A stretch of DNA of 64,000 nt, taken from Cyanophora paradoxa CCMP329 (Eukaryota > Plantae > Glaucophyta). Positions within the stretch are counted from its first letter, which is position 1; every line of letters starts with the position of its first letter. The notes below the pieces were generated by a model, which ran no database searches, had not been told where the DNA came from, and saw only the letters and a program-made list of their open reading frames with translations. Positions 33,907-46,633 of the stretch are shown here, one piece after another. Location of the stretch: the NCBI GenBank assembly GCA_004431415.1, contig QPMI01000494.1:186001-250000 (forward strand), given 5' to 3'. Both the position numbers and the translations under genes were made by a program.

Positions 33907-36806
33907 CTACAAGAAGCTAAGGAGGTTGGAAGCGTACTGCATGGGCTTAACAGCGGGGTGGGGGACCTGCGCGCGGGCCCGGGCCCCGCGTGAGCCCAGG
34001 AGCCTCGAAAGCAAAACGGGAGTAAGGGGGAACGGTCAGCTGACCTCCTTGAACTGGACGAACTGCGGCTTGAGGTCCTCCTTCAGCTTTATGAGAGCTC
34101 CCTTGTTCTTCATCTGAGGCGGGCGGCCTCATATGAGCGGGACGCGGGGGCGAGCGATGCGTGGGGGAGCGAGCGGCCCGCTCCGTTCGCTATCTCGCAG
34201 TTCGCCGGGGAAGGGGGGGGGAGGGAGGGGGGTACGCGAACCTGGTCGCAGTAGTTGGGGGCCGAGAAGATGGTGATCAGGCGCCCGCCCGCCTCCACCT
34301 CGTACCCCTCGTCCTTGCACTCGTGCGACCGGATCACCAGGTCTGCGGGGGGTACGGCGTTCAGAGGAGGGTGCGGGTCGCGCGGGACGGCGCGCGGAGT
34401 TCGCTCGCGTACCCAGGCCGTTGTCGTCCAGGAACCTGGAGGAGGGGGTACGCGGGTCAGCTCCTCGGCTCCCCCCTCGCCCAGGGGGATACACCGCACC
34501 GCTTCGTGACGTCAGGTCCGAACGCGACGCCGACGCCGCGCTTGCTGGGGCCCCAGCCCGGCGCAGGCTGCGGATCGCTCCACAGCATCTCGCTCATGTA
34601 CCCTGGCGCCGCGCGCCCGTCAGGCCGTACCCCCCTCAGGTCGTCAGGAAACGGCGTACCCTCCTCCGGAGGCTCACGGAAGCGGTCTATCGCGCGGAGG
34701 TCGTCGAGCTTGACGCCGTCCTGCGCGGCGCGGGCGGGGCGGGGCGGGGCGGGGCGGGGCGGGCGTGAAAAAGGCAGAAGGCGACGCGAGCGCAGGCAGA
34801 GAGGGAGGAGAAGGCCCGGCCCCTTCCCCTCTCTTCCCGCTTCCAGCCCCTTCCTTCTTCTTCTTCTCACCTTGGAGAAGAGGCCACCGTGGACGACGAA
34901 GACTCGCTTCTCGATGACGCACGCCAGCGGCTGCGGCGGCGGCGGCGGCGGCAAGGTCAGCTTGAAGGCGGGGCAAGCCGGGCGGCCGGGCGGGCGCGGG
35001 TTCGAGTCCGCACGAGGGCGCAGAACATCTCGCTGAAGAGCTCGTAGATCAGGTCGCCGGGGTACTTCGCCCTGCACTCCCCCTCGAACCCGTACATCTG
35101 AAAGGGGGGGTACGTGAGTTTCCGGGCTGCCCAGAGGGGGGGGGTGTGGGGGAGGGGGTACCTTGTTCATGTTCCTGGACTCGTGGTTGCCGCGGGTCAT
35201 GTTGATGCAGTCGGGGTCGGCGACCTGCCGCGGGGTACGGCGGGCTCGGAAACGGAATCGATGTACCCGGCACGACGGGCGGGGGAGGAGCCGACCTTGT
35301 AGGCCGTCATCGCGAGGATAACCTCAAGCGAGAAGCTGCCGCGGTCGACCATGTCGCCTGTACCCCGACCCGCCGCGGCTCAGGGGTGGGGAGGGTACGA
35401 GGGCGCTGGAGGAAGGAAGGCCAAGGGGGGCGGGGGTACCGTTGAAGAGGTAGGGGTTGTCGGCGGAGGGCAGCCCGTTGATCTCGAAGATGTTAAGGAG
35501 GTCATAGTACTGGCCGTGCTGCGCGCGAGAGAAAGAGTACCCCCGTGAGGCGCCGCGAAGCAATGCGGTGCGGTGCGATGCGGTGCGATGCGATGCGGAG
35601 CGGCGGGGCGGAGTGGCCAAGAGGTCTGAGAAGGGGGGTACAGGGGCGACGGACCGTGTCGCCGCAGACTGTGATCTGGCGCGTGTTGGCGGCGAGCTTC
35701 AGGTCGACCACGGTCGGCATGGAGCTCAGGATCTCGATGGCTCGCAGCAGGATCTGCACGAGGTACCTGCGCGCGGCGCGGCCTCAGCAGCGAGCGCGGC
35801 GCGCACGCCCGTTCGGCCGCCCGCCCGGCCGCCCGCCCGCCCGCACCGCTTGTGGAGCCGCTTCTGGGCCTTCATGTGGTCCAGCAGCGCCTTGCAGAAC
35901 TCCACGGAGACGGACCCGTCGTCGGGCAGCCGCGGGCCGTCGTAATCCGACTCGACCGAGATGCTCTGGAGGTCGCGCAGGGCTCTGGCGGACCACTGCG
36001 CGCGCGCGGAGCGGGGCGGCGTAAGGCGCGCGCTGCGGGCGGGCGGGCGGGCGCGCGGGCGGGCGGGTGGGCGGGTCGCTCGCTCGCTCGCTCGCCTTCT
36101 CCTTGGCCTTCTCGTCGACGGCGATGGCCTTCGCGAACGCGATCTGCTGGATCACCTTGCGGCACTCCTTCAGCTTCGCCTGGGCGTCCGGGTCCGCGGG
36201 AACGATCTTGACGACCTGGTGGCGGAGGCGGTGAGACAACGGCGGAGGCGGCGGCGGCGGCGGCGGAGCGGGCGCACCGCTTCAAAGTCCCGCTGCGCGT
36301 CCTTGTACTTGCCCATTAGCATGTAGGCCGAGCCGCGCCTGCGCGGGGGAGGCTCGCCGCCGCGCATGGAGGCGCTCGAATGCGCCGTCAATGCACCTGT
36401 AGTACGCCTTGATGAAGTTCCGGTCAAGTTTGATGGCCTGGGCGGATGGGCGATCAGACGCCCCGCAGGCGTTGAGCGGTGGCCTCGGCGGCCTCGCTCA
36501 GACGGTCAAGGCCGCGCATATGCGTCGCACCTGCGTGGCATCCTCGACCGCGCTGCCGTACTCCTCGATTTTAATGTGCGCAAAGGCACGGTTCGAGTAG
36601 AGCACGGCGCTCGGTGCCAGGTCGATAGCCTGCATGCCGCACGAGTCGGCGCGGCATTAGACGCCGTAATCGGGCGGCGCGGATCGCACGGGCGGCCCCC
36701 GCGAGAGGCGCACCTTGCTGTACAAATCCACGGCCTTCGCGAACGACGCGCTCTGGAACAGCGCGTTGCCCGCCGCCTTGAGGCGATCAGCCTCCTCTGT
36801 GGCCAT
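33907..36806 (-). CDS. PP5: Serine/threonine protein phosphatase 5 (TPR + PPP catalytic domain)
   Basis: [31 protein letters not shown] (TPR); QITVCGDT|[26 protein letters not shown]|[79 protein letters not shown]; PP5-specific C-terminus [19 protein letters not shown]. Confidence 0.97.
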
Positions 36807-36906
36807 GGCGGCGGAACGATGCACGATGAGTCGATGACTTCTTGAGGGGTACAGGTGACGGGCAATAAGATGGGTGCCTCCGGTTTTTGACTGCCTCTTC
36901 TTGCTC

Positions 36907-38851
36907 ATGATCGGGGGAGACGCTGATAGCATTCCAGATCACGGGCGTACGCGCGAGGCACCGCCCGGGCTCGACGCGCTGGACGACCCGTTGCTGACCA
37001 AGATCCTGTCGTTCCTGGGCTTCTGGGAGCGGTTGCGCTCCGCCGGCGTATGCAGGCGATGGCGTACGGCGTCCTTCGAGCGACCGCTGCCGACGGACCT
37101 TTCGCTGACGTGCCCTTGCGCTGCGCTGTTGAAAAATTAAGTACGAGGCGCATTTCTGATATCTAGAGCTTCCGCAGGGTTGCCGCTGACGTGCGCAACA
37201 CCTGCGGTCGCCCGCCGTGCGCCGCACCTCGCTTCCATGCCGGGGGCCTGCACCTCAGCGCCCCCGCCCGCAGGACCGTGGAGCGGCTCGTCTCCGCGGA
37301 CCACCTGCGGGACGTGCCGCCCGATGACCGCGGCGCGCCGGCGCTGCCGACTTGCGACGCGGCCGCACTCCTGCGCCTACCGCTCTGCGCTTCCCTCGAG
37401 GAGGCTCGTATCCCGCAGGCTGTGCGTTAGCGAGATTTGATCCGAGCCGGGGCCGGCCGCGCAGATCGAGTTGTCCGTCTACTGTGCGGCAGACGTAGGC
37501 CGGCTCGACCGCCCCGCCGTGCGCGATCGAATTGGTTTCCGATCAAATTCGATCCGCCGCGACTCAGATTTTATCGCAGGTGCACCTAGCCGACGTGGCA
37601 GCCGCTTTCCCGCCGACCCTCCGCCGCCTCCGCCTTCGCGCCCCGTGCCACTACCCCTTCGTCCTCGGCGACCTCTTCCTCGCCGTCGGCGTACCCCTCT
37701 CCGAATCCGCCCCGGCCCTGGAGCACCTCAGCCTCGAGGGGGTAGACGGAGAGCCCGGGTTCGTCCCCGCCGGCCGCTCCCACGAGGCGCGCGCGTACCC
37801 CCTCCCGCGCGCCCCCGCCCTGCGCACGACCGCTTACCCCCGTCCCCGCAGCTGCCTCCGCTGCTCTCGCTGCGGGTACTGGATGCGACCCTTGCCGAGC
37901 CCGACGTACCCCTCCTTTCCTCCGCCCTCCCCAGCCTCCAGCTCGTACGGCGGGTAGCGTACTACGACGGGGCCGCCTGCGGCGCCCTGCCGGCAATGGC
38001 CTCCGCCGGGATTCGAGCCCGGGACCTCCAGCTCCTCTCTACGGACCTGCGGTGCCCGCGGGCGGCCGCGGCCCTCTGCGCCGTCCTAAAAATAGATCCG
38101 GGGGATCCGGGCGTCGGCCCCGCGCGCCTGGCCCTGGCCCGCAGCGTGCTGCCCGACTCCTGGCCCGACCAAGCCCTCGCCGGCCTTGAGAGGTGCGCTG
38201 TTAGAAACCTGAAACATTGGCTGTACCCCTCGGGTCCAGAACCCCATTTACCCCCGCAGGCTCTCCCTCACCTCCTGCGTCGCCCGCCCCGCCTCCCTCC
38301 GCCTTCCCGCCGGTACCCCCCTCCAACTCCCTCCCTCAGCCTGCCTATAAAACGCGGTTCCCACCCATCGCAGCCGCCCCCAGCCTCCGCCACGTACGTC
38401 TCGTGGACCTTCGCCTACCCCACGACGACCTGCGCGCCGGTACTCCCCCCGCGAATCGCGTACCCCTCTTCTTCCGAATCGCGTCCCCCCTCAGGGGAGC
38501 TGGACCTGCTCGCGGCGCTGGAGGCCCTGGGGGATACCGTTCAGATCGAGGCGCGGCTGGGCACTGTACCCCCCATCCGAGCTCGCGCCTGATCATGACG
38601 TTCCGAGTTCCCTCAGGTTTGCCTCTCGGACCTGGCCTGGCCCCCCGCCGCCCTCCGCGGATTCCTCCGCGGCCTCCGCTCATCGCCCGCCCTCCTCCGG
38701 TTCGCGTACCCCCCCACACCCACTCAGCTGAGCTGACGCCCGGCCCGGCTCGCCCCATGCCAGGCGCGTGGAGGCGTTCGTGGGGTCTGAGGAGCCATCG
38801 GTCGCGGCTGAGGCGGGGGCTTACCTCTCCGCCCGCGCCGCCCTCCGCTAG
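36907..38851 (+). CDS. F-box protein with downstream Leu-rich (LRR-like) region
   Basis: GLDALDDPLLTKILSFLGFWERLRSAGVCRRWR is an F-box consensus; later exons LRRLRL, LEHLSL, LRVLDA, LRHVRL; last exon RVEAFVGSEEPSVAAEAGAYLSARAALR*. Confidence 0.8.
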
Positions 38852-39554
38852 ATAGCTATAGCTTTCCGCTGACCGCCCGCCGGCGACGGCGACGGCGACG
38901 TTCGAAGTCACTGAGTCTTTAAATTTAAATTCGATGGTCCGGGATCCGTACCCGTGCATGCCATGCACGTGCCGCAGTGCCCGGCGCCGCTGGTCGATGG
39001 TGCGCGCAGCATAACTACTTATATCCTTTGTTGATGTACAACACTAGTGTACGATAGCTTGCATTACTCGAATACTTCCGGGCCTGGTGTGCAGGAGACG
39101 TCGACTTGAATTCGAAAGGGCGAGAGCCGGGCTCGGGGCAAAGAAAGGAAAGATATCCATCTACGAGAGGGAAATGAAGACGGAATTTACGCGGGGCCGG
39201 GGGCCCGGGGAGAAGGAAGCCTTGAAGCTCGAGAGGGGCCCGGGGAGAGGGAAGCCTTGCCAGGCTTGAAGCTCGAGAGACGCGTACGGAAATCGATCCG
39301 ATCACGAATCGAACTCAGAATTCGAAGGAGACAAGAAGACAGATCTAGAGAATGCGTGCGGCAGCAGGCCAGCTGGCGATGCGGGCGGGCGCCCGCGGGC
39401 AGCGTCTCTCCACTCCACTCAGATCCGCGGGTGTGCGTTCCGCTCACAAGCCAAATTAAGGATCCGCGGCTGTTCTTGAAACCGCGCGTGACGCGAAACA
39501 GCAGACTCGCAGGGCGCGGTGCGGCGGGCGCTCTCGGGCCTATACATTATTCGC

Positions 39555-39821
39555 ATGGGGGTCGACTCGCACGAGAGCTCGCTCCCGACCTCGGGCCCCG
39601 GCGCCAAGCCGAAGGAGGACGAGGCGGCGCGCCAGGGCGAGGAGGAGGCGCGAAGCGGGCGCGCTGCCGTGTCGAGGGACGAGCGCGGGCCGCACGTGGA
39701 CGACTACGGCCCGGACGCCGCGACGGGCGGCGACGGCCGCGGCGAGTCTGCGACCATCCGCCCGCCCCGGGAGAACGAGCGGCACGACATGGGCCTCCCG
39801 CACCCGCCCCGCGGCAACTAA
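39555..39821 (+). CDS. Small hydrophilic, likely disordered protein (88 aa)
   Basis: MGVDSHESSLPTSGPGAKPKEDEAARQGEEEARSGRAAVSRDERGPHVDDYGPDAATGGDG...PPRGN*; third codon positions strongly G/C as in neighbouring real exons; AT-richer flanks. Confidence 0.5.
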   Translation: MGVDSHESSLPTSGPGAKPKEDEAARQGEEEARSGRAAVSRDERGPHVDDYGPDAATGGDGRGESATIRPPRENERHDMGLPHPPRGN

Positions 39822-39989
39822 CAATGCTTCGATCGAGCTCGGTCCACGAAATTATAATTAAGCTGTGAACAGTGAAAGCTGTACTACGGTACATGTACAC
39901 CTCGCAAATAACATGAGCTATAAATTAAAGAATCCTGCGATAAGCTGTAGCTAGCCTGGAAGGACCCGCCGCGACCCCTACGATATCGA

Positions 39990-40051
39990 TCACGATCTCG
40001 AGCTGGCACCGCTGCGATTTGCGATCGACGAGCTCGAGTGGGAGCGCGCAG

Positions 40052-40082
<31 letters not shown>

Positions 40083-43000
40083 GCCGCCGCCCCCCGCGGA
40101 TCGCTCCGCCGGCCGGGCCGGGGGCGAGCTCGAGCTCGCGGCGTCCGAGGGGGCGCGGGCCTCGAGCTCCTCCTCCTCCGCCTCGGGGGGCGCCAGCAGC
40201 GGCGCGGAGAGCCGTACCCCCGGGGGGCCGGCTTCCTCGAGGCGGACGTCACGGGGGTCCACGGTCCGCGCCGGCGCCGGCGCAGCGAGGCCGAGCTGGT
40301 AGGCCCCCGCCGGCGCCAGGGAAGAGGCGGCGTCGGAGAAGGACGAGGCGACCGACGGCGCCGGCGATTTGAAGGGCGGGGCGGGGGCGGGGGGCGGGAA
40401 GAGGGCGGCGCGGGCGGCGGCGGCGGAGGGGTAGCGGTCGGCGACGTCGCGGCGGAGCATGCGGGCGAGGGCGGCGCCCAGATCGCCCCCGAAGTCGGCC
40501 TCGGGCGCTGCGGCGCGGGAGTGTGAAGAGGAGAACGAGGCGGGAAACAGGGCGGGGCGGGGCGGGGCGGGGCGGGGCGGACAGCGGGCCGGGGTCCAGT
40601 CGACGAAGAACTCGAGCGCCGGCCGCCGCTTCGTCATCATCTCCACGCAGGTCGCCGCCAGGCTGCGCGCGGCCGGCCCCGAACCTCTCAGCCGCGCCCC
40701 GCAGCGCCCAGGGGCGCCCCGGCGCTAGCGCTCGCCTGTAGAGGTCGGAGGAGGGCGTGGGGCGCCCGGCGCGCTGCTCGGGGTCGGCGTAGGCGTAGGT
40801 CCCGATCTCGGTCGCCTGGTCCAGATCCGGCCGCCGCGTCGTCGAGAGCCCGAAGTCCACCAGGTAGTAGCGCCCGTCCTCCCCCGCGATCAAATTCGAC
40901 GGCTTCACCTGAGCCGCCGGTGACGGGGTACGGGGTGCCGGAGGGGGTACGTAAACGCACGTCCCTGTGGATGACGCCGCGCTCGTGCACGTACGCGAGG
41001 GCTCCTAGGAGGTCGTCCAGGAGCCGCAGCACCTTACCCGGGGGGTAAGGGAGGGGGAAGAGGAGGGGGTAGCGGTCGCACCTCGCTGCGGGGGTACGGG
41101 TGCACGCGGGCGCGGAGGGCGCGCTGCAGGTCCTGCCCCTTCACCTCCGCCATCGCGTGGTACCTGGGGGGTACCGCGTCGGCGGGCGCAGGGGGGTAAG
41201 CGGACGGCGGGCGGGGGCGCACATGTCCTGCATCCACACGAAGGAGCCAAGGAGCTGCCGGGAGGGAGGGAGGGGGGTAAGCGCCGAAACATGGGGGGGG
41301 GGAAGAAGGGGGGGTAGAAGGGGGCGGGGTGGCGTGCCTTCGGAATCCGTGGGTGGTCCAGGAGCTCGAGGGTTCGGCCCTGAGGGGGGTACCGGTCTCG
41401 GTCGGGGCGGGGGGTACGCGGACGGGCCAGTTCGCACCTCGTCGAGGAAGAGGCGCGCGGCCTTCTCCACGTGCGACTCGTTCGAGGAGCGGTCCAGGAA
41501 CGTGAACTGGGGTACGGGGTTGGCCGGGGGGTACGGGGGTACGTGGGTACGGGAGCGGGGGCGGGCCTTCTTGAGGATGCATGGGCGCTTGGAGAGGAAG
41601 TGCAGATCGACGGCGCGGAACGCCGTGCCGAATTCGCCGCCGCCGACGCGGGCGGCGGGGAAGAAGCGGCGGCTGACGGCGAGCGGGAGGCGGCAGTAGA
41701 CGCACGCCGCCTCCGCCGCCTCGTCCTCCGACCCGCACCCGGGGTTCACCCGCAGACACTTCGTGCAGACGGCCCTGCCGGCGGGCTCCGTGAGGGGAGG
41801 GGTACGGGCGAATCGGGAGGGTGGGTACCGGGCGAAGAGCTCAGGGCAGTCGCGCCGCTGCGTGGCGGCGAGGCTCGCGGCGATGCGAAGCGCGGCGCCG
41901 GCTGCGCCGGCGTGAGCCGGACCCGGGCCGGGCCGGGCCGGGCTGGGCTAGCCTAGCACACGCACCGGGGGCGGGCCGGGGCGCGTCGCCGGGCGCGAGG
42001 GGCTGGGGGGCGCCGCAGGCGGAGCCCGAAGCGGAGGCGGCGGGGGAGGAGGCGGAGAGGGAGGGCGAGGGCGGGGCCTCGCCGCCGCTCCCGCCGGCCG
42101 CGCTGCAGGCGGGCGAGGCGGACTTGCCCTCGGCCTCGGCCAGGGCCCCTGGGCCCAGGGCCCCAGCCGGCAAAGTCCCCCGCAGCGTGTTGCCGTCCGG
42201 GCGCCGGATCGTGATCACTGCGCCGCCGCCCGCCCGCTCGAAAGGGCGGGGGGAGCTCGAGGGGGGAAGGCGGCGGGGGTACCGACCTTCGCGCCCCTCT
42301 GGATCGGTGGCGACGGTGACCTGCGGGGCGCCGGCGCCATGAGAACGAGGCAGCGAAGTCGAAGTCAAAGCGTAAGGCGCGCCTGCAGGCCGCAGTCGCG
42401 CCGGGCGCGGCGGCGGCGCCAGAGGCAGAAGGCGGCGACGGCCAAGGCGGCGATGACCGCCCCGCCCGCCACGCCCCCGGCCGCGAAGATCGCGATCTGG
42501 CGCCCTTCGGGTCGGGCAAAGCAAAGCGAACCGAAGCGAAGCAAAGCAAAGCGAACAGGGCGGGCGCACGCTGGTCCCCGCGCCGGCGGGCGCCTCGACG
42601 ACCACGGGGCGGGCCTCGGAGCCGGCGGCGAAGGTAGGGTCCAGGGCGGCGGGGCCCTCGCGCCCCGCCTGGCCCAGCACCAGGTCGGTCGCCGGCGCCG
42701 CCGCCGCCGGCAGCTCCTCCCCAAGCGCCCCCGTCGTCGCCGCTGGCGCCCCGGCCCGCCGTCAGTCGGGCCCGGGCCGGGGGGCGGGCGCCGAGGGGGT
42801 AGAGGGGCGCGGCGGCGCACCGATGACGATGCGGGGGCCCTTTATGTACTCGATACCCCCCGGGACATTCGTCGCGTACATCTGGGGCGCGGGTCGCGCC
42901 GGGGGACGCGGGGGGGGATACGTATGTATACGGGGGGCGGGGCGGGCCTCGTAGATGCCGGGAGAGGTGGCGGCGGGGGTGAAGTGGATGCGGACGCGGC

Positions 43001-43410
43001 CCTTGGAGCCGTCGACCTGGAAGGGCTTCCCGCAGGCGGCGTCGAGGACGGCTGGAGTGGGCGCAGCGATGCTCCCCAGCGGGGCCGGGCTGCCCCACTT
43101 CTCTGGCGAGGCGGCCGCCCCCGCCGGCGCCCGCAGCAGCTGGCAGATCCGCGCAACCATCCCCGGCACCGCCACCGGCTTCCAGGTCACCTGCGCCGCG
43201 CGATTTGATCCGGGGTTCAGTTTGGCGCCAGCCGGCCCCGCGGACCTGAAAGTAAAGCGAAGAAGCTGTGGAGAGGTCGACTTCGACAGGCGCCCCCGCC
43301 TCGACGGGGCTCGCTGCCGCCCCGCCGGCCAGAGCGCCCGCGGCCGCCGCGAGGACCCACACGCACGCCGCGAGCAGGGCGCGCGCGCCCGAGGCCCGAG
43401 CGAGCGCCAT
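39990..43410 (-). CDS. Receptor-like Ser/Thr kinase: signal peptide, ectodomain, TM helix, CxxC..CxxC zinc ribbon, Pkn2/Spk (cyanobacterial-type) kinase domain, low-complexity tail
   Basis: MALARASGARALLAACVWVLAAAAGALA; TM IAIFAAGGVAGGAVIAALAVAAFCLW-RRRR; in-frame splices to AVCTKCLRVNPGCGSEDEAAEAACVYCRLPL; kinase VGGGEFGTAFRAVDLHFLSKRPCILKK|FTFLD..EKAARLFLDE..LDHPRIPK|LLGSF..IHRD|VKPSNLI..LVDFG..IGTYAYADPEQ..SDLYS|LAAT..ADRYPSA. Confidence 0.88.
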
Positions 43411-44318
43411 CGCCGCTGCTGCGTCGACGTCTCTTCTAGGAACTGCTCGCCTCAGAGAAGCGCAGGGCAGAGCCCGGCGGCAGCTGGGGAATGCGCGTTG
43501 CGCATTGTCAGGTCCGGTTCGTCACACCCGCGAGCTGGGCTCCGCCAACTCCTTACGGGTGCAATGAAGCTTTGTTGGACGGGAGCTCGAGCCGCTGCCG
43601 GCGCCAAGCGGCGGGCTGTGCTTAGAGCTCCGCGCTCGTGCGATCGACCTGCTGCCGTTGCCGCTAGCTATAGCCTAGGCCTGCATCGCTGTCACTGTTG
43701 CCGCAAGCGCGATGAGAAAGGAGATGCGATCCTGCGAACCGAAAGCGCGGCGAGCAGACACGCGTGTCCTTAAGCTTCAGTCTGATTTCACTTCCGCGTT
43801 CGTCCCTTCTTCCCCCCTCCCAGTTCCACTTCTTCCCCCCTCCGGTCCTGAGGCGCGCGTCTGCTGGACGCCCAAATCGCATCTTCTGGGACTCTGGATC
43901 TTGCCGTGCGCGCCCGGCGTGGCCCAGATGCTGCTTTGCCGAGCAGCAGTCCTAGGCCTTGTACCCAGACTGCCAAAAAAAAGCAAGTCTTCCCACGTAC
44001 CCAGCTAGCAAGTGCCCACGCGCGTGTCCAAGATCGAAGATCCCCGGCGTGCCGCGACCTCCTTCGCGCAGCAGCAGCGAGCGACAGTCGGTGGCGAACC
44101 CGATCCGGCGTTAGTCGTCATCAACCCGCAGCGCTAGCCTTGCGCACTCCCCAAAAAGTTTTCCGGGCGCGGTCCGGGCGAGCATCCAAAGTCGTTGGGC
44201 AGATCTATCTGAGAGTCCTTCGCTTCCGTTGGTCCGCGCCCGCCCCGTGCACCGAACCGAAGCTTGCCTCTCGGCCTTACCTTCGTCGCGCAGGAACGTC
44301 GCAGAACTCGCACGAAGG

Positions 44319-46633
44319 ATGCTTTCCGAGCAAAAGGATGGTATTCAAGACGCAAAGGACGCGAGTTCGAACGCGGAGAAGAGCGCGGATGAGCCTTCGA
44401 ACTTGGCGGCAGCGCCCGTGCGCCTCCAGCTCGCGAGCGAGCAGCCGGATCTGTGGGGCTGGGCGCTCGGCGTTCCCTTCGGTGTGAAGAGCGAATCCGT
44501 AGAGAACGAGACCGGCCCGCCGCTCGCCCCTCCGCACGCCGCCGGGCCGGGCCCGCCCCAACCTCCCTTCCCGCCGTGGGCGGCCACGCTGGCGCAGGCC
44601 CAGGCGCTGCAGTTTCCCCTCCTGGCGCCCGGCGGCGCGTCCGACGCGGATCCGATGGCCGCGGTTGCCGCGGCCGCGGCGGCGGCTGTGATGGCGGCCG
44701 GGGCGAGCATCGCGCGTCGCGCCAGCTCCGACCCGACCTCCCCAATGCCGGCGGCGCTCCCGGCGGTGCCGTCCCGCGGGAACCTCGCCGAGCGCTCCCC
44801 TTCCTTCTCGTCCTCCTCCTCCTCGTCCCGCCCCTCGGCCGTCCTCGGGCCCTCCCCGGCGCCCCTCGCCGCCGCCTCCTCGGCCGACGAGGCTGCGGGC
44901 GCCGCGGCGGTCGCCCCGTGGCTCGTCGCGGACGGCGGTTCCATCGCGGCCGCCGCCCTTCGCCTCGCGGCGCGCCTCTCCGCCCAATCCACGATCGGCG
45001 TGCCCGCCTCCTCGTCCGCCCCGCTTCCCGTCCCCTTCGACTTCTCCTCCTTCCCGCCCGGGAGCCTCCCCGCGGCGGCCGCGCCGCGGGCGAGCCGCGA
45101 GCTGCCCCGCCCCTCGCAATCCGCCTCCGCCTCCGCCTCGGGGCCGCCGCACGGCGGCCTCAGCGGCAGCGGCGGCTCGGGAAGCGACCCCGACACGCGC
45201 GGCGCGCCGCTCGCGGCAGGAGGCAGTGGTGGCGGCCTCCGCCTCCGCCGGCCCCGGTCCGCTCCTAGCCTTCCCTTCGCCTTGTTTGTTTCGCCTCTGC
45301 TGACGCCTAGGCCTACGCCTACGCCTTTGCCTTCTTCGCATCCGCGCAGCAATGCCTTCATGATCTTCAGCAACGAGGTACTTGCACCCGTACCCCCCGC
45401 CTCGCCCCCGCCCCCGCCCCGCTCGGCTCAGCTGACCGGGGCCGGGGCGCCCCCGCTCCGCCTTTCTTCGTTCGCAGCACCGGCGGCGCCTTGCGGACGA
45501 GCACCCGGGTATGCTGAACGTGCACGTCTCCAAGATCCTTGGCCAGGTGCCGGCAGGGAGGGCGGGCCGGCCGGCGGGCGCCCGCGCGCTCGCGCCCGCG
45601 CCCCGCCCGCCCCGCCCCGCCCCGCCCCGGCCCGGCCCGCTCTCTTCGGTGCCGGCCGTCCGGCCCCGCCCTGCCCCGCCCCACCCGCCTCGCCCCGCCC
45701 CGCCCCGCCCGCCCCGCCCCGCTCTCTTCGGTGCCGGCCGTCCGGCCCCGCCAATTCTCGACCGGCTCTGCTTCGACCCGGCCGGCTCGGCCCGATGGCT
45801 GGCGCGCCCAAGGGGCGAGCCGCCAGTGGCCATGCGCCGGGGGGCGCAGCCAAGCCCCCTCGGGCCAAACCCCCTCGGGCCCCCTCGGGCCCCCTTTCCT
45901 GGGGGGCGGCCGCCCCCCCGGCGCCGCCCCTCCTTTCTACCGCCCATTCAAATTCGGCTTTCCCCCCTCAATCCCCACCCACCCCCCCATCCCCATATTT
46001 CCGCCGATCGCGTACCCCCCTTTCTCAGATGTGGAAATCTCTACCCGAGGCTGAGCGGGGGCGGTACCGCGCCCTCGAGATGGTAGAGAAGGACGCGTTC
46101 AGGCGCCTGTACCCCAACTACAAATGCGAGCCGTACCCCTTCCCCCCCTGCTCTCCGCTGGTGGTTCGGCCGCGCTGACGCCGTACTTGTACCCCGCAGT
46201 CAAGAACCAGAAGCGCAACAAGAAGAAGCGCAAGGCAAAGGACGCGGGGGACTCGGACGGAGGCGGGGACGCCGAGGGCGCGTCCTCCCCCTCCCCCGAT
46301 CCGGGCTCCAGCGCCGGCAGGCAGGGGGGTACGGGTACCGCCCTCCAGCCGATCGCGAAGGCCGCCCCTCCCCCGGCGCCGGCCCCCCCGGCGGCCCCTT
46401 CGGCGGCCCCCGAGGCCCCACTGAACCTTCCGAGCCTGGTGGGATTGATCCCGCTCTCCGATTACCCCGGCGCCCACCCGTCCGACGGCCACCCCCCCGG
46501 CTGGCCCTACCTGCCCGTACCCCCCCTTCCCAGCCCGTTCCCCAGCCTACCCTCTCTGGGGCTCCTGGACCCCTCCTTCGCCTCCGAGGAGCCCAACCTT
46601 CCGGAGTACCCCCCTCGCGACCGGCAGGAGTAA
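44319..46633 (+). CDS. Sequence-specific HMG-box transcription factor (MATA_HMG/ROX1/SOX-like)
   Basis: Spliced RRPR|NAFMIFSNE|HRRRLADEHPGMLNVHVSKILGQ|MWKSLPEAERGRYRALEMVEKDAFRRLYPNYKF|KNQKRNKKKRK (basic tail/NLS); flanked by Ala/Ser/Pro-rich regions. Confidence 0.9.

Follow-up and report, generated by a model that had tools for sequence, protein, structure and literature searches.

Our analysis of a 64,000-nucleotide stretch of the Cyanophora paradoxa CCMP329 genome (assembly GCA_004431415.1, contig QPMI01000494.1, positions 186,001 to 250,000; hereafter the window) revealed a minus-strand gene at 39990..43410 that encodes a predicted type I receptor-like Ser/Thr kinase, which appears to be built from a four-cysteine (4-Cys) prefix and a kinase domain of the cyanobacterial Pkn2/Spk type. 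The gene is real and expressed, with ectodomain, transmembrane (TM) helix and kinase on one transcript. This picture is built on what the data establish directly, namely the gene and its splicing, the order of its domains, its intact catalytic residues, a family of related genes and the affinity of the kinase. Taken as a whole, and leaving the donor of the kinase aside, we give it a probability of about 0.7.

The coding sequence comprises 17 exons and 796 amino acids. Spliced by motif, the exons (43410-43246, 43190-42948, 42881-42821, 42742-42570, 42496-42383, 42320-42287, 42217-41966, 41901-41829, 41774-41567, 41506-41438, 41379-41338, 41254-41223, 41163-41082, 41032-40961, 40908-40736, 40662-40583 and 40507-39990) form an open model of 2391 nt that runs without internal stop from the ATG at 43410 to the stop codon at 39992-39990. 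The translation is identical at 796 of 796 positions to tig00020902_g14986.t1 (C. paradoxa gene tig00020902_g14986), so the gene model was already public. All 16 introns are spliceosomal, 49-83 nt long and bounded by GT-AG or GC-AG, and the surrounding DNA is GC-rich and eukaryotic, with short introns. GC donors occur in 5/16, a high share compared with most eukaryotes; the joints of three of these introns are listed among the RNA-type contigs. An earlier reading of the letters alone (the original prediction) had claimed an in-frame splice from signal peptide to kinase, and this is borne out by the model. Public sequencing runs holding about half of the region's words were compared with the window and proved to be spliced. 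One contig of the RNA-type run X15 (contig 11, 2024 nt) carries exons 1-15 on a single piece, with its last base at 40856, and follows the model to the base from the 5′ untranslated region through signal peptide, ectodomain, TM helix and Cys prefix to the exon with the DFG motif; all eight predicted positions (1506, 1266, 1204, 1032, 883, 632, 557 and 351) are exact. The TM exon and the zinc-ribbon exon with the Cys prefix thus stand together on this contig and not on separate transcripts. Run X17, from a separate study, has exons 1-7 on one contig and exons 8-15 on another, with 18 nt missing inside exon 7, and full bridging of exons 1-15 was seen in a single run, X15. Exons 15-17 are carried by run X19, and the C-terminal tail is also present in RNA contigs 9, 12 and 16. 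Intron joints were found in X15, X17 and partly X19 and not in DNA run X1, and one continuous DNA contig spans 40856-43900. On the same strand, transcription extends over at least 43411..43761 as the 5′ untranslated part of exon 1 (X15 contig 11, X17 contig 15), and a probable 3′ untranslated region occupies 39844..39989 (X15 contig 8; RNA contig 39844-40044).

The encoded protein has the layout of a type I receptor kinase, with a predicted signal peptide, an ectodomain, one TM helix with a positive-inside flank and a kinase. Two hydrophobic segments (approximately residues 6-34 and 211-241) stand out, and signal peptide and TM helix were called by hydropathy alone. All parts are on the minus strand. 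The predicted signal peptide (residues 1 to ~30; 43321..43410) has a basic start, a hydrophobic core and an Ala-rich end, and is followed by the ectodomain (42570..43320), which consists of a beta-rich domain at about residues 40-157 and an Ala/Gly/Pro stalk to residue 214. The single TM helix (residues 215-240) contains GxxxG motifs and is followed by RRRR at 241-244 (together 42407..42496). A juxtamembrane linker of low complexity, rich in Ser, Ala, Pro and Gly (residues 245-374; 41768..42406), leads to the 4-Cys prefix, C375-x2-C378-x17-C396-x2-C399, a putative metal-binding knuckle (41693..41767). Then come the Hanks-type RD Ser/Thr kinase domain of the cyanobacterial Pkn2/Spk type (residues 409-661; 40398..41665) and a disordered, Ser/Pro/Ala-rich tail with 25% Ser plus Thr (residues 662-796; 39990..40397 including the stop codon). 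The spliced model contains the RRRR and the kinase motifs named by the original prediction, with the catalytic residues intact (G416-x-G-x-F-G421, K440, E464, HRDVKPSN at 538-545 and DFG at 558-560). The ectodomain of about 220 residues claimed earlier is present in a smaller form: the N-terminal part measures 214 residues including the signal peptide, and the mature ectodomain about 180, of which about 120 are beta-rich. Transit peptides of the cyanelle carry an N-terminal Phe that is needed for import (PMC2222254), and a plastid transit peptide was ruled out for this protein by its hydrophobic N-terminus, which lacks such a Phe. An intron three codons before the first Cys was considered as a sign of exon shuffling and set aside, since one intron per 50 codons makes such a position common by chance.

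By affinity, the kinase appears to be of the cyanobacterial Pkn2/Spk type, with a bacterial rather than a eukaryotic catalytic core, as originally predicted. Database searches used exons or paralogues as stand-ins, one query (41438-41773) including the in-frame intron 9; the joined spliced model was compared locally by alignment, trees and scoring with hidden Markov models (HMMs). Exons 9-10, searched against 1.84 billion representatives, matched mostly 4-Cys kinases of the cyanobacterial type after the paralogues described below. A profile of four paralogues gave 150-191 bits for its top ~70 matches, all of those with an organism name being cyanobacteria, and kinases outside the cyanobacterial-type clade reached best single-domain scores of at most ~140. 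The best solved structures in the PDB were bacterial StkP at 91 bits and a eukaryotic kinase at 87 bits. Among plasmids, every match to exons 9-10 was cyanobacterial, and the matches listed for a paralogue kinase reached 138 bits in cyanobacteria and 88 bits elsewhere. A related kinase gene adjoins psbA on two cyanobacterial plasmid records (L082 1-2826 and L084 1-2119). The ten listed Atlas neighbours of the kinase are bacterial clusters, a search of viral contigs gave nothing useful and a metagenome scan returned distant kinases only. Likeness to the cyanobacterial kinases extends to stretches outside the universal motifs: CxxC-x2-L-x5-RF/Y-x-P, AxD after strand 2, C-V/I-x-K, HPxIPxL, EQ after subdomain VIII and a short C-lobe. 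Fold does not discriminate the origin of the kinase, because in a model of the prefix and kinase of paralogue g4585 (mean predicted local distance difference test, pLDDT, 90.8; prefix 93-97) the top match, PknB (Z 27.1), was tied with Myt1.

Kinase-only maximum-likelihood trees were built from cyanobacterial kinases together with GTDB rows of seven further phyla and were bacterial only, without eukaryotic, Gloeomargarita or Gloeobacter rows; five long-branch Myxococcota/Acidobacteriota rows and near-duplicates were left out. In these trees the five Cyanophora genes form a group (100/100) inside a clade with cyanobacterial kinases (100/99), and a topology that joins them to the nearest, Chloroflexota-type clade fails the AU test (p-AU 0.0009). 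Their position within the clade is unsettled, with cyanobacterial monophyly at 40/28. A quick tree of 95 rows agrees (99), and the smaller, careful trees were used for support values. Some of the rows labelled cyanobacterial are metagenome proteins assigned by their prefix, and the contig of one of these has CHAT/CHASE2 and DUF1822 neighbours. Such neighbours are typical of cyanobacteria. An operon of an unclassified metagenome bacterium (L090 2447-7128) contains vWA, DZR-FHA and DZR-PP2C genes together with a zinc-ribbon kinase of the cyanobacterial-type clade.

The 4-Cys prefix links the Cyanophora proteins to the same kinases. An HMM built only from cyanobacterial-type prefixes gave each of the five Cyanophora prefixes a higher score than its 500 shuffled versions; most of this score came from the second Cys pair and the residues leading into strand 1. 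Of the signature named by the original prediction, the four Cys are present and are invariant across the five paralogues; their first pair is CxxC in Cyanophora versus Cx4C in 55/55 matched cyanobacterial-type prefixes. In the relatives the prefix begins at residue 4-5 and any TM segment comes after the kinase, whereas a TM helix precedes the kinase in 5/5 Cyanophora proteins and in none of the listed relatives, so that the claimed reversal of order held for every 4-Cys-prefix relative checked. The broader statement that the kinase always comes first in cyanobacteria fits these relatives and fails for the CHASE2 kinases, which have an N-terminal sensor and three TM segments (PMC2176072). The Cyanophora proteins are derivatives, not regular members, of the cyanobacterial 4-Cys kinases. 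Pfam searches found no PknG_rubred and no TPR domain in the paralogues or exons, and neither Cys pair has a Gly after it. A literature search on the 4-Cys prefix returned no paper.

C. paradoxa appears to have a family of at least five predicted receptor kinases with a cyanobacterial-type catalytic part. In the search with exons 9-10, four proteins stood far above the rest, all from C. paradoxa (g4585, g17581, g17554 and g12847), and the order ectodomain, one TM helix, four Cys, kinase is common to all five genes, the g4585 model lacking a signal peptide exon. Kinase identity among paralogues is 60-82%, while the ectodomains, mutually related weakly, share ~25-48%, that of the window being 48% identical to the one of g4585 and ~25% to that of g12847. 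Paralogues with different ectodomains, which the original prediction suggested looking for, are thus found in the same genome. Next to g4585 lies tig00000826_g4584.t2, a 177-residue model 93% identical to the g4585 C-lobe and either a partial tandem duplicate or an assembly duplication, and g17554 and g17581, on one contig, have near-identical kinases and differing ectodomains.

Several points weigh against this interpretation. The Cyanophora group sits on a long stem of 1.1 changes per site and shares only 33-39% identity with the cyanobacterial kinases. With no eukaryotic kinases in the trees, the case for placing it outside eukaryotic families depends on scores. The spacing of the first Cys pair deviates from the cyanobacterial relatives, and the CxxC zinc-ribbon kinase of the unclassified bacterium falls within the same clade and also beats shuffles on the prefix HMM. 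The ectodomain fold is of low confidence (mean pLDDT 52), its best Z of 6.6 being below the meaningful level. RNA support consists of assembled contigs, not single molecules, and surface location, ligand and kinase activity are predictions from sequence.

As to its history, we suggest that a cyanobacterial-type unit of 4-Cys prefix and Pkn2 kinase reached the nuclear genome, where it shed the partner domains that follow the kinase in bacteria, acquired introns and came to stand after a signal peptide, a small ectodomain of beta-sandwich fold and a single TM helix. The family would then have duplicated, with the ectodomain diverging much faster than the kinase. The plastid endosymbiont, named as donor by the original prediction, is a candidate only, in view of the unsettled position within the clade, the lack of a homologue in another alga and the unclassified bacterium in the clade. 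The same protein could instead carry a kinase that the Cyanophora line acquired later by horizontal transfer, the source being a free-living cyanobacterium or some other organism with a kinase of the clade, to which we give only slightly less than an even chance. Among the matches of three large searches and in the metagenome scan no homologue appeared in other eukaryotes, 4-Cys-type kinases occur on cyanobacterial plasmids, some of them conjugative, and the unclassified bacterium sits in the clade. The long stem, the deep, unsettled branching and the full intron load, on the other hand, suit an old transfer, and the blanks are weak, since sampling of other glaucophytes is poor and even an ectodomain of 48% identity escapes the word-index search. 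Because the family is seen in no other eukaryote, we regard the odds between endosymbiotic and later transfer as near even. The fuller scenario, in which a Hanks-type kinase of the plastid ancestor was rewired by the host into ligand-gated plasma-membrane receptors that stand beside the Pelle-type receptor-like kinases (RLKs) of glaucophytes and contain a cytosolic metal or redox switch, is possible but doubtful.

The ectodomain may be a small beta-sandwich: a low-confidence model of the g12847 ectodomain, used as a stand-in, has seven strands and a pLDDT of 60-80 over most of residues 1-93. Its nearest folds are carbohydrate-binding module (CBM), FlgD and GOLD sandwiches with Z at most 6.6, which allows no assignment, and a carbohydrate-binding assignment was dropped for the same reason. 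Pfam and NCBIfam gave nothing useful on the ectodomain and prefix exons, and Atlas features held nothing informative for the ectodomain. No homologue of the ectodomain outside the family was found, a blank that proves nothing given the paralogue missed by the same word-index search, and the host origin ascribed to it earlier is conjectural. The protein could alternatively be a membrane-anchored kinase of the endoplasmic reticulum (ER), Golgi, vacuole or outer plastid-facing membranes, serving luminal sorting or sensing with no surface ligand. We consider this unlikely. The GOLD domains among the nearest folds, beside the CBMs, are those of p24 sorting proteins, a sequence scan shows no N-glycosylation sequon in the small ectodomain, and a floppy linker of 130 residues lies between TM helix and kinase, all of which would suit such a compartment. 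The fold matches, however, are all weak, no C-terminal ER-retention motif is evident in the protein sequence, and fast divergence of an ectodomain joined to a conserved kinase would be typical of ligand-binding receptor families.

On the main reading, the protein would pass into the secretory route, which would leave its ectodomain outside or luminal and its kinase in the cytosol. An extracellular ligand, for which a glycan is a weak lead, may shift a dimer mediated by the GxxxG motifs, upon which the RD kinase could trans-autophosphorylate its activation loop (candidates T573 and T577) and the Ser-rich tail and, once activated, phosphorylate cytosolic targets. The 4-Cys knuckle might bind a metal ion against the N-lobe and restrain the kinase, either structurally or in response to redox state, in a manner analogous to the rubredoxin domain of PknG.

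A highly diverged eukaryotic kinase of the tyrosine kinase-like (TKL) or RLK/Pelle type, resembling the cyanobacterial kinases through convergence or long-branch attraction, is very improbable. The DPE motif in subdomain VIII (residues 582-584) recalls RLK/Pelle kinases, and the trees hold bacterial rows only. C. paradoxa has been credited with seven RLKs (PMC10868138), among which the protein could be counted. The cyanobacterial scores, however, come to roughly double the highest eukaryotic PDB score, RLK and IRAK chains are missing from both top-60 PDB lists, Pkinase outscores PK_Tyr_Ser-Thr in the four paralogues scanned with Pfam (4/4), and it is with cyanobacterial kinases that the family-specific stretches agree. 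The earlier claim that the kinase is unrelated to Pelle/IRAK kinases rests on score rankings and not on a tree with Pelle rows; the kinase is probably not an RLK/Pelle member. That the fusion is an annotation artefact, joining neighbouring genes or a cyanobacterial contaminant by prediction or assembly, might be argued from assembled contigs and a single bridging run, but is largely refuted by the base-exact spliced contig with its canonical in-frame junctions and 16 spliceosomal introns, by the continuous DNA contig and by the same order in four paralogues.

The kinase gene lies head to head with a plus-strand gene at 44229-46178 whose product has an HMG box at its C-terminus (PF00505, one exon matching at E 6e-5). 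About 3 kb from the kinase gene, an intron-split minus-strand gene at ~35500-36850 with TPR and PPP5 matches probably encodes protein phosphatase 5, and is itself head to head with a plus-strand F-box protein gene at 36874-38800 (PF00646, E 1e-6). RNA-type contig depth of X15 at 39500-39650, beyond the 3′ end of the kinase gene, may come from a convergent gene that ends there or from chance matches.

The closest known systems are the cyanobacterial 4-Cys kinases of the Pkn2/Spk type (cbSTKI-TM and cbSTKII; PMC2176072), which the Cyanophora kinases resemble in sequence, in tree position, in the four Cys directly before strand 1 and in an equal spacing from the second pair to the G-loop. By score, a long-loop subgroup from Phormidesmis, Synechococcus PCC 7335, Leptolyngbya and Oscillatoria is nearest. 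In the cyanobacterial proteins, TM segments (as in cbSTKI-TM, with its N-terminal Cys prefix; PMC2176072), GUN4, WD40 or solute-binding domains come after the kinase, whereas the Cyanophora protein has signal peptide, ectodomain and TM helix first and only a disordered tail after the kinase, besides a CxxC first pair and 16 introns in its gene. The cyanobacterial CHASE2-3TM-Ser/Thr kinases (PMC2176072) share the N-terminal sensor and the C-terminal, cyanobacterial-type kinase and differ in being multi-pass with a CHASE2 sensor; because they are sensor-first, this order is not foreign to cyanobacteria. No CHASE2 protein is among the listed kinase matches, and Pfam found no CHASE2 in the Cyanophora proteins. 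Mycobacterial PknG, with a rubredoxin-like domain and a kinase (PMC8546545), likewise has two CxxC pairs directly before a bacterial Hanks kinase, and these pairs lower its activity and respond to redox change (PMC8546545). PknG is also among the fold matches of the g4585 model (7q52, 309 columns, TMq 0.72, root-mean-square deviation 8.5). It is, however, a soluble protein with a TPR domain and a separate membrane sensor, and is not the nearest kin by sequence; the likeness is one of analogy, not kinship.

In layout, the protein was compared with plant RLK/Pelle kinases and with the separately evolved receptor kinases of brown algae, oomycetes, Chlorella and Monosiga (PMC3268121). Like these, it has a signal peptide, an ectodomain, one TM helix with basic stop-transfer residues, a cytosolic kinase and paralogues with diverged ectodomains, and by this layout would work like a receptor-like kinase. 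We found no description of the gene or of this route to a receptor kinase in the literature searched, most subscription papers lying outside it, and the C. paradoxa genome paper does not discuss such kinases. The receptor-kinase family appears to derive from a bacterial kinase, probably of cyanobacterial origin. It suggests that a transferred signalling enzyme can be reversed in the membrane and recruited to host sensing instead of being returned to the plastid, and that RLK counts based on architecture can lump unrelated kinases together in early-branching Archaeplastida. It also provides an expressed eukaryotic example of the uncharacterised 4-Cys prefix. If the plastid ancestor was the donor, this would be a receptor-kinase class founded on a signalling enzyme of the endosymbiont, joining a ligand signal from outside with a cytosolic metal or redox switch. 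Receptor kinases have been reinvented several times before, those with leucine-rich repeats having arisen in this layout on four or more independent occasions, from kinase groups of eukaryotes (PMC3268121). These systems all use kinases of the eukaryotic receptor-kinase group, whereas the Cyanophora proteins combine a bacterial-type kinase with a Cys knuckle and an unclassified ectodomain, and the new part is the bacterial catalytic core.

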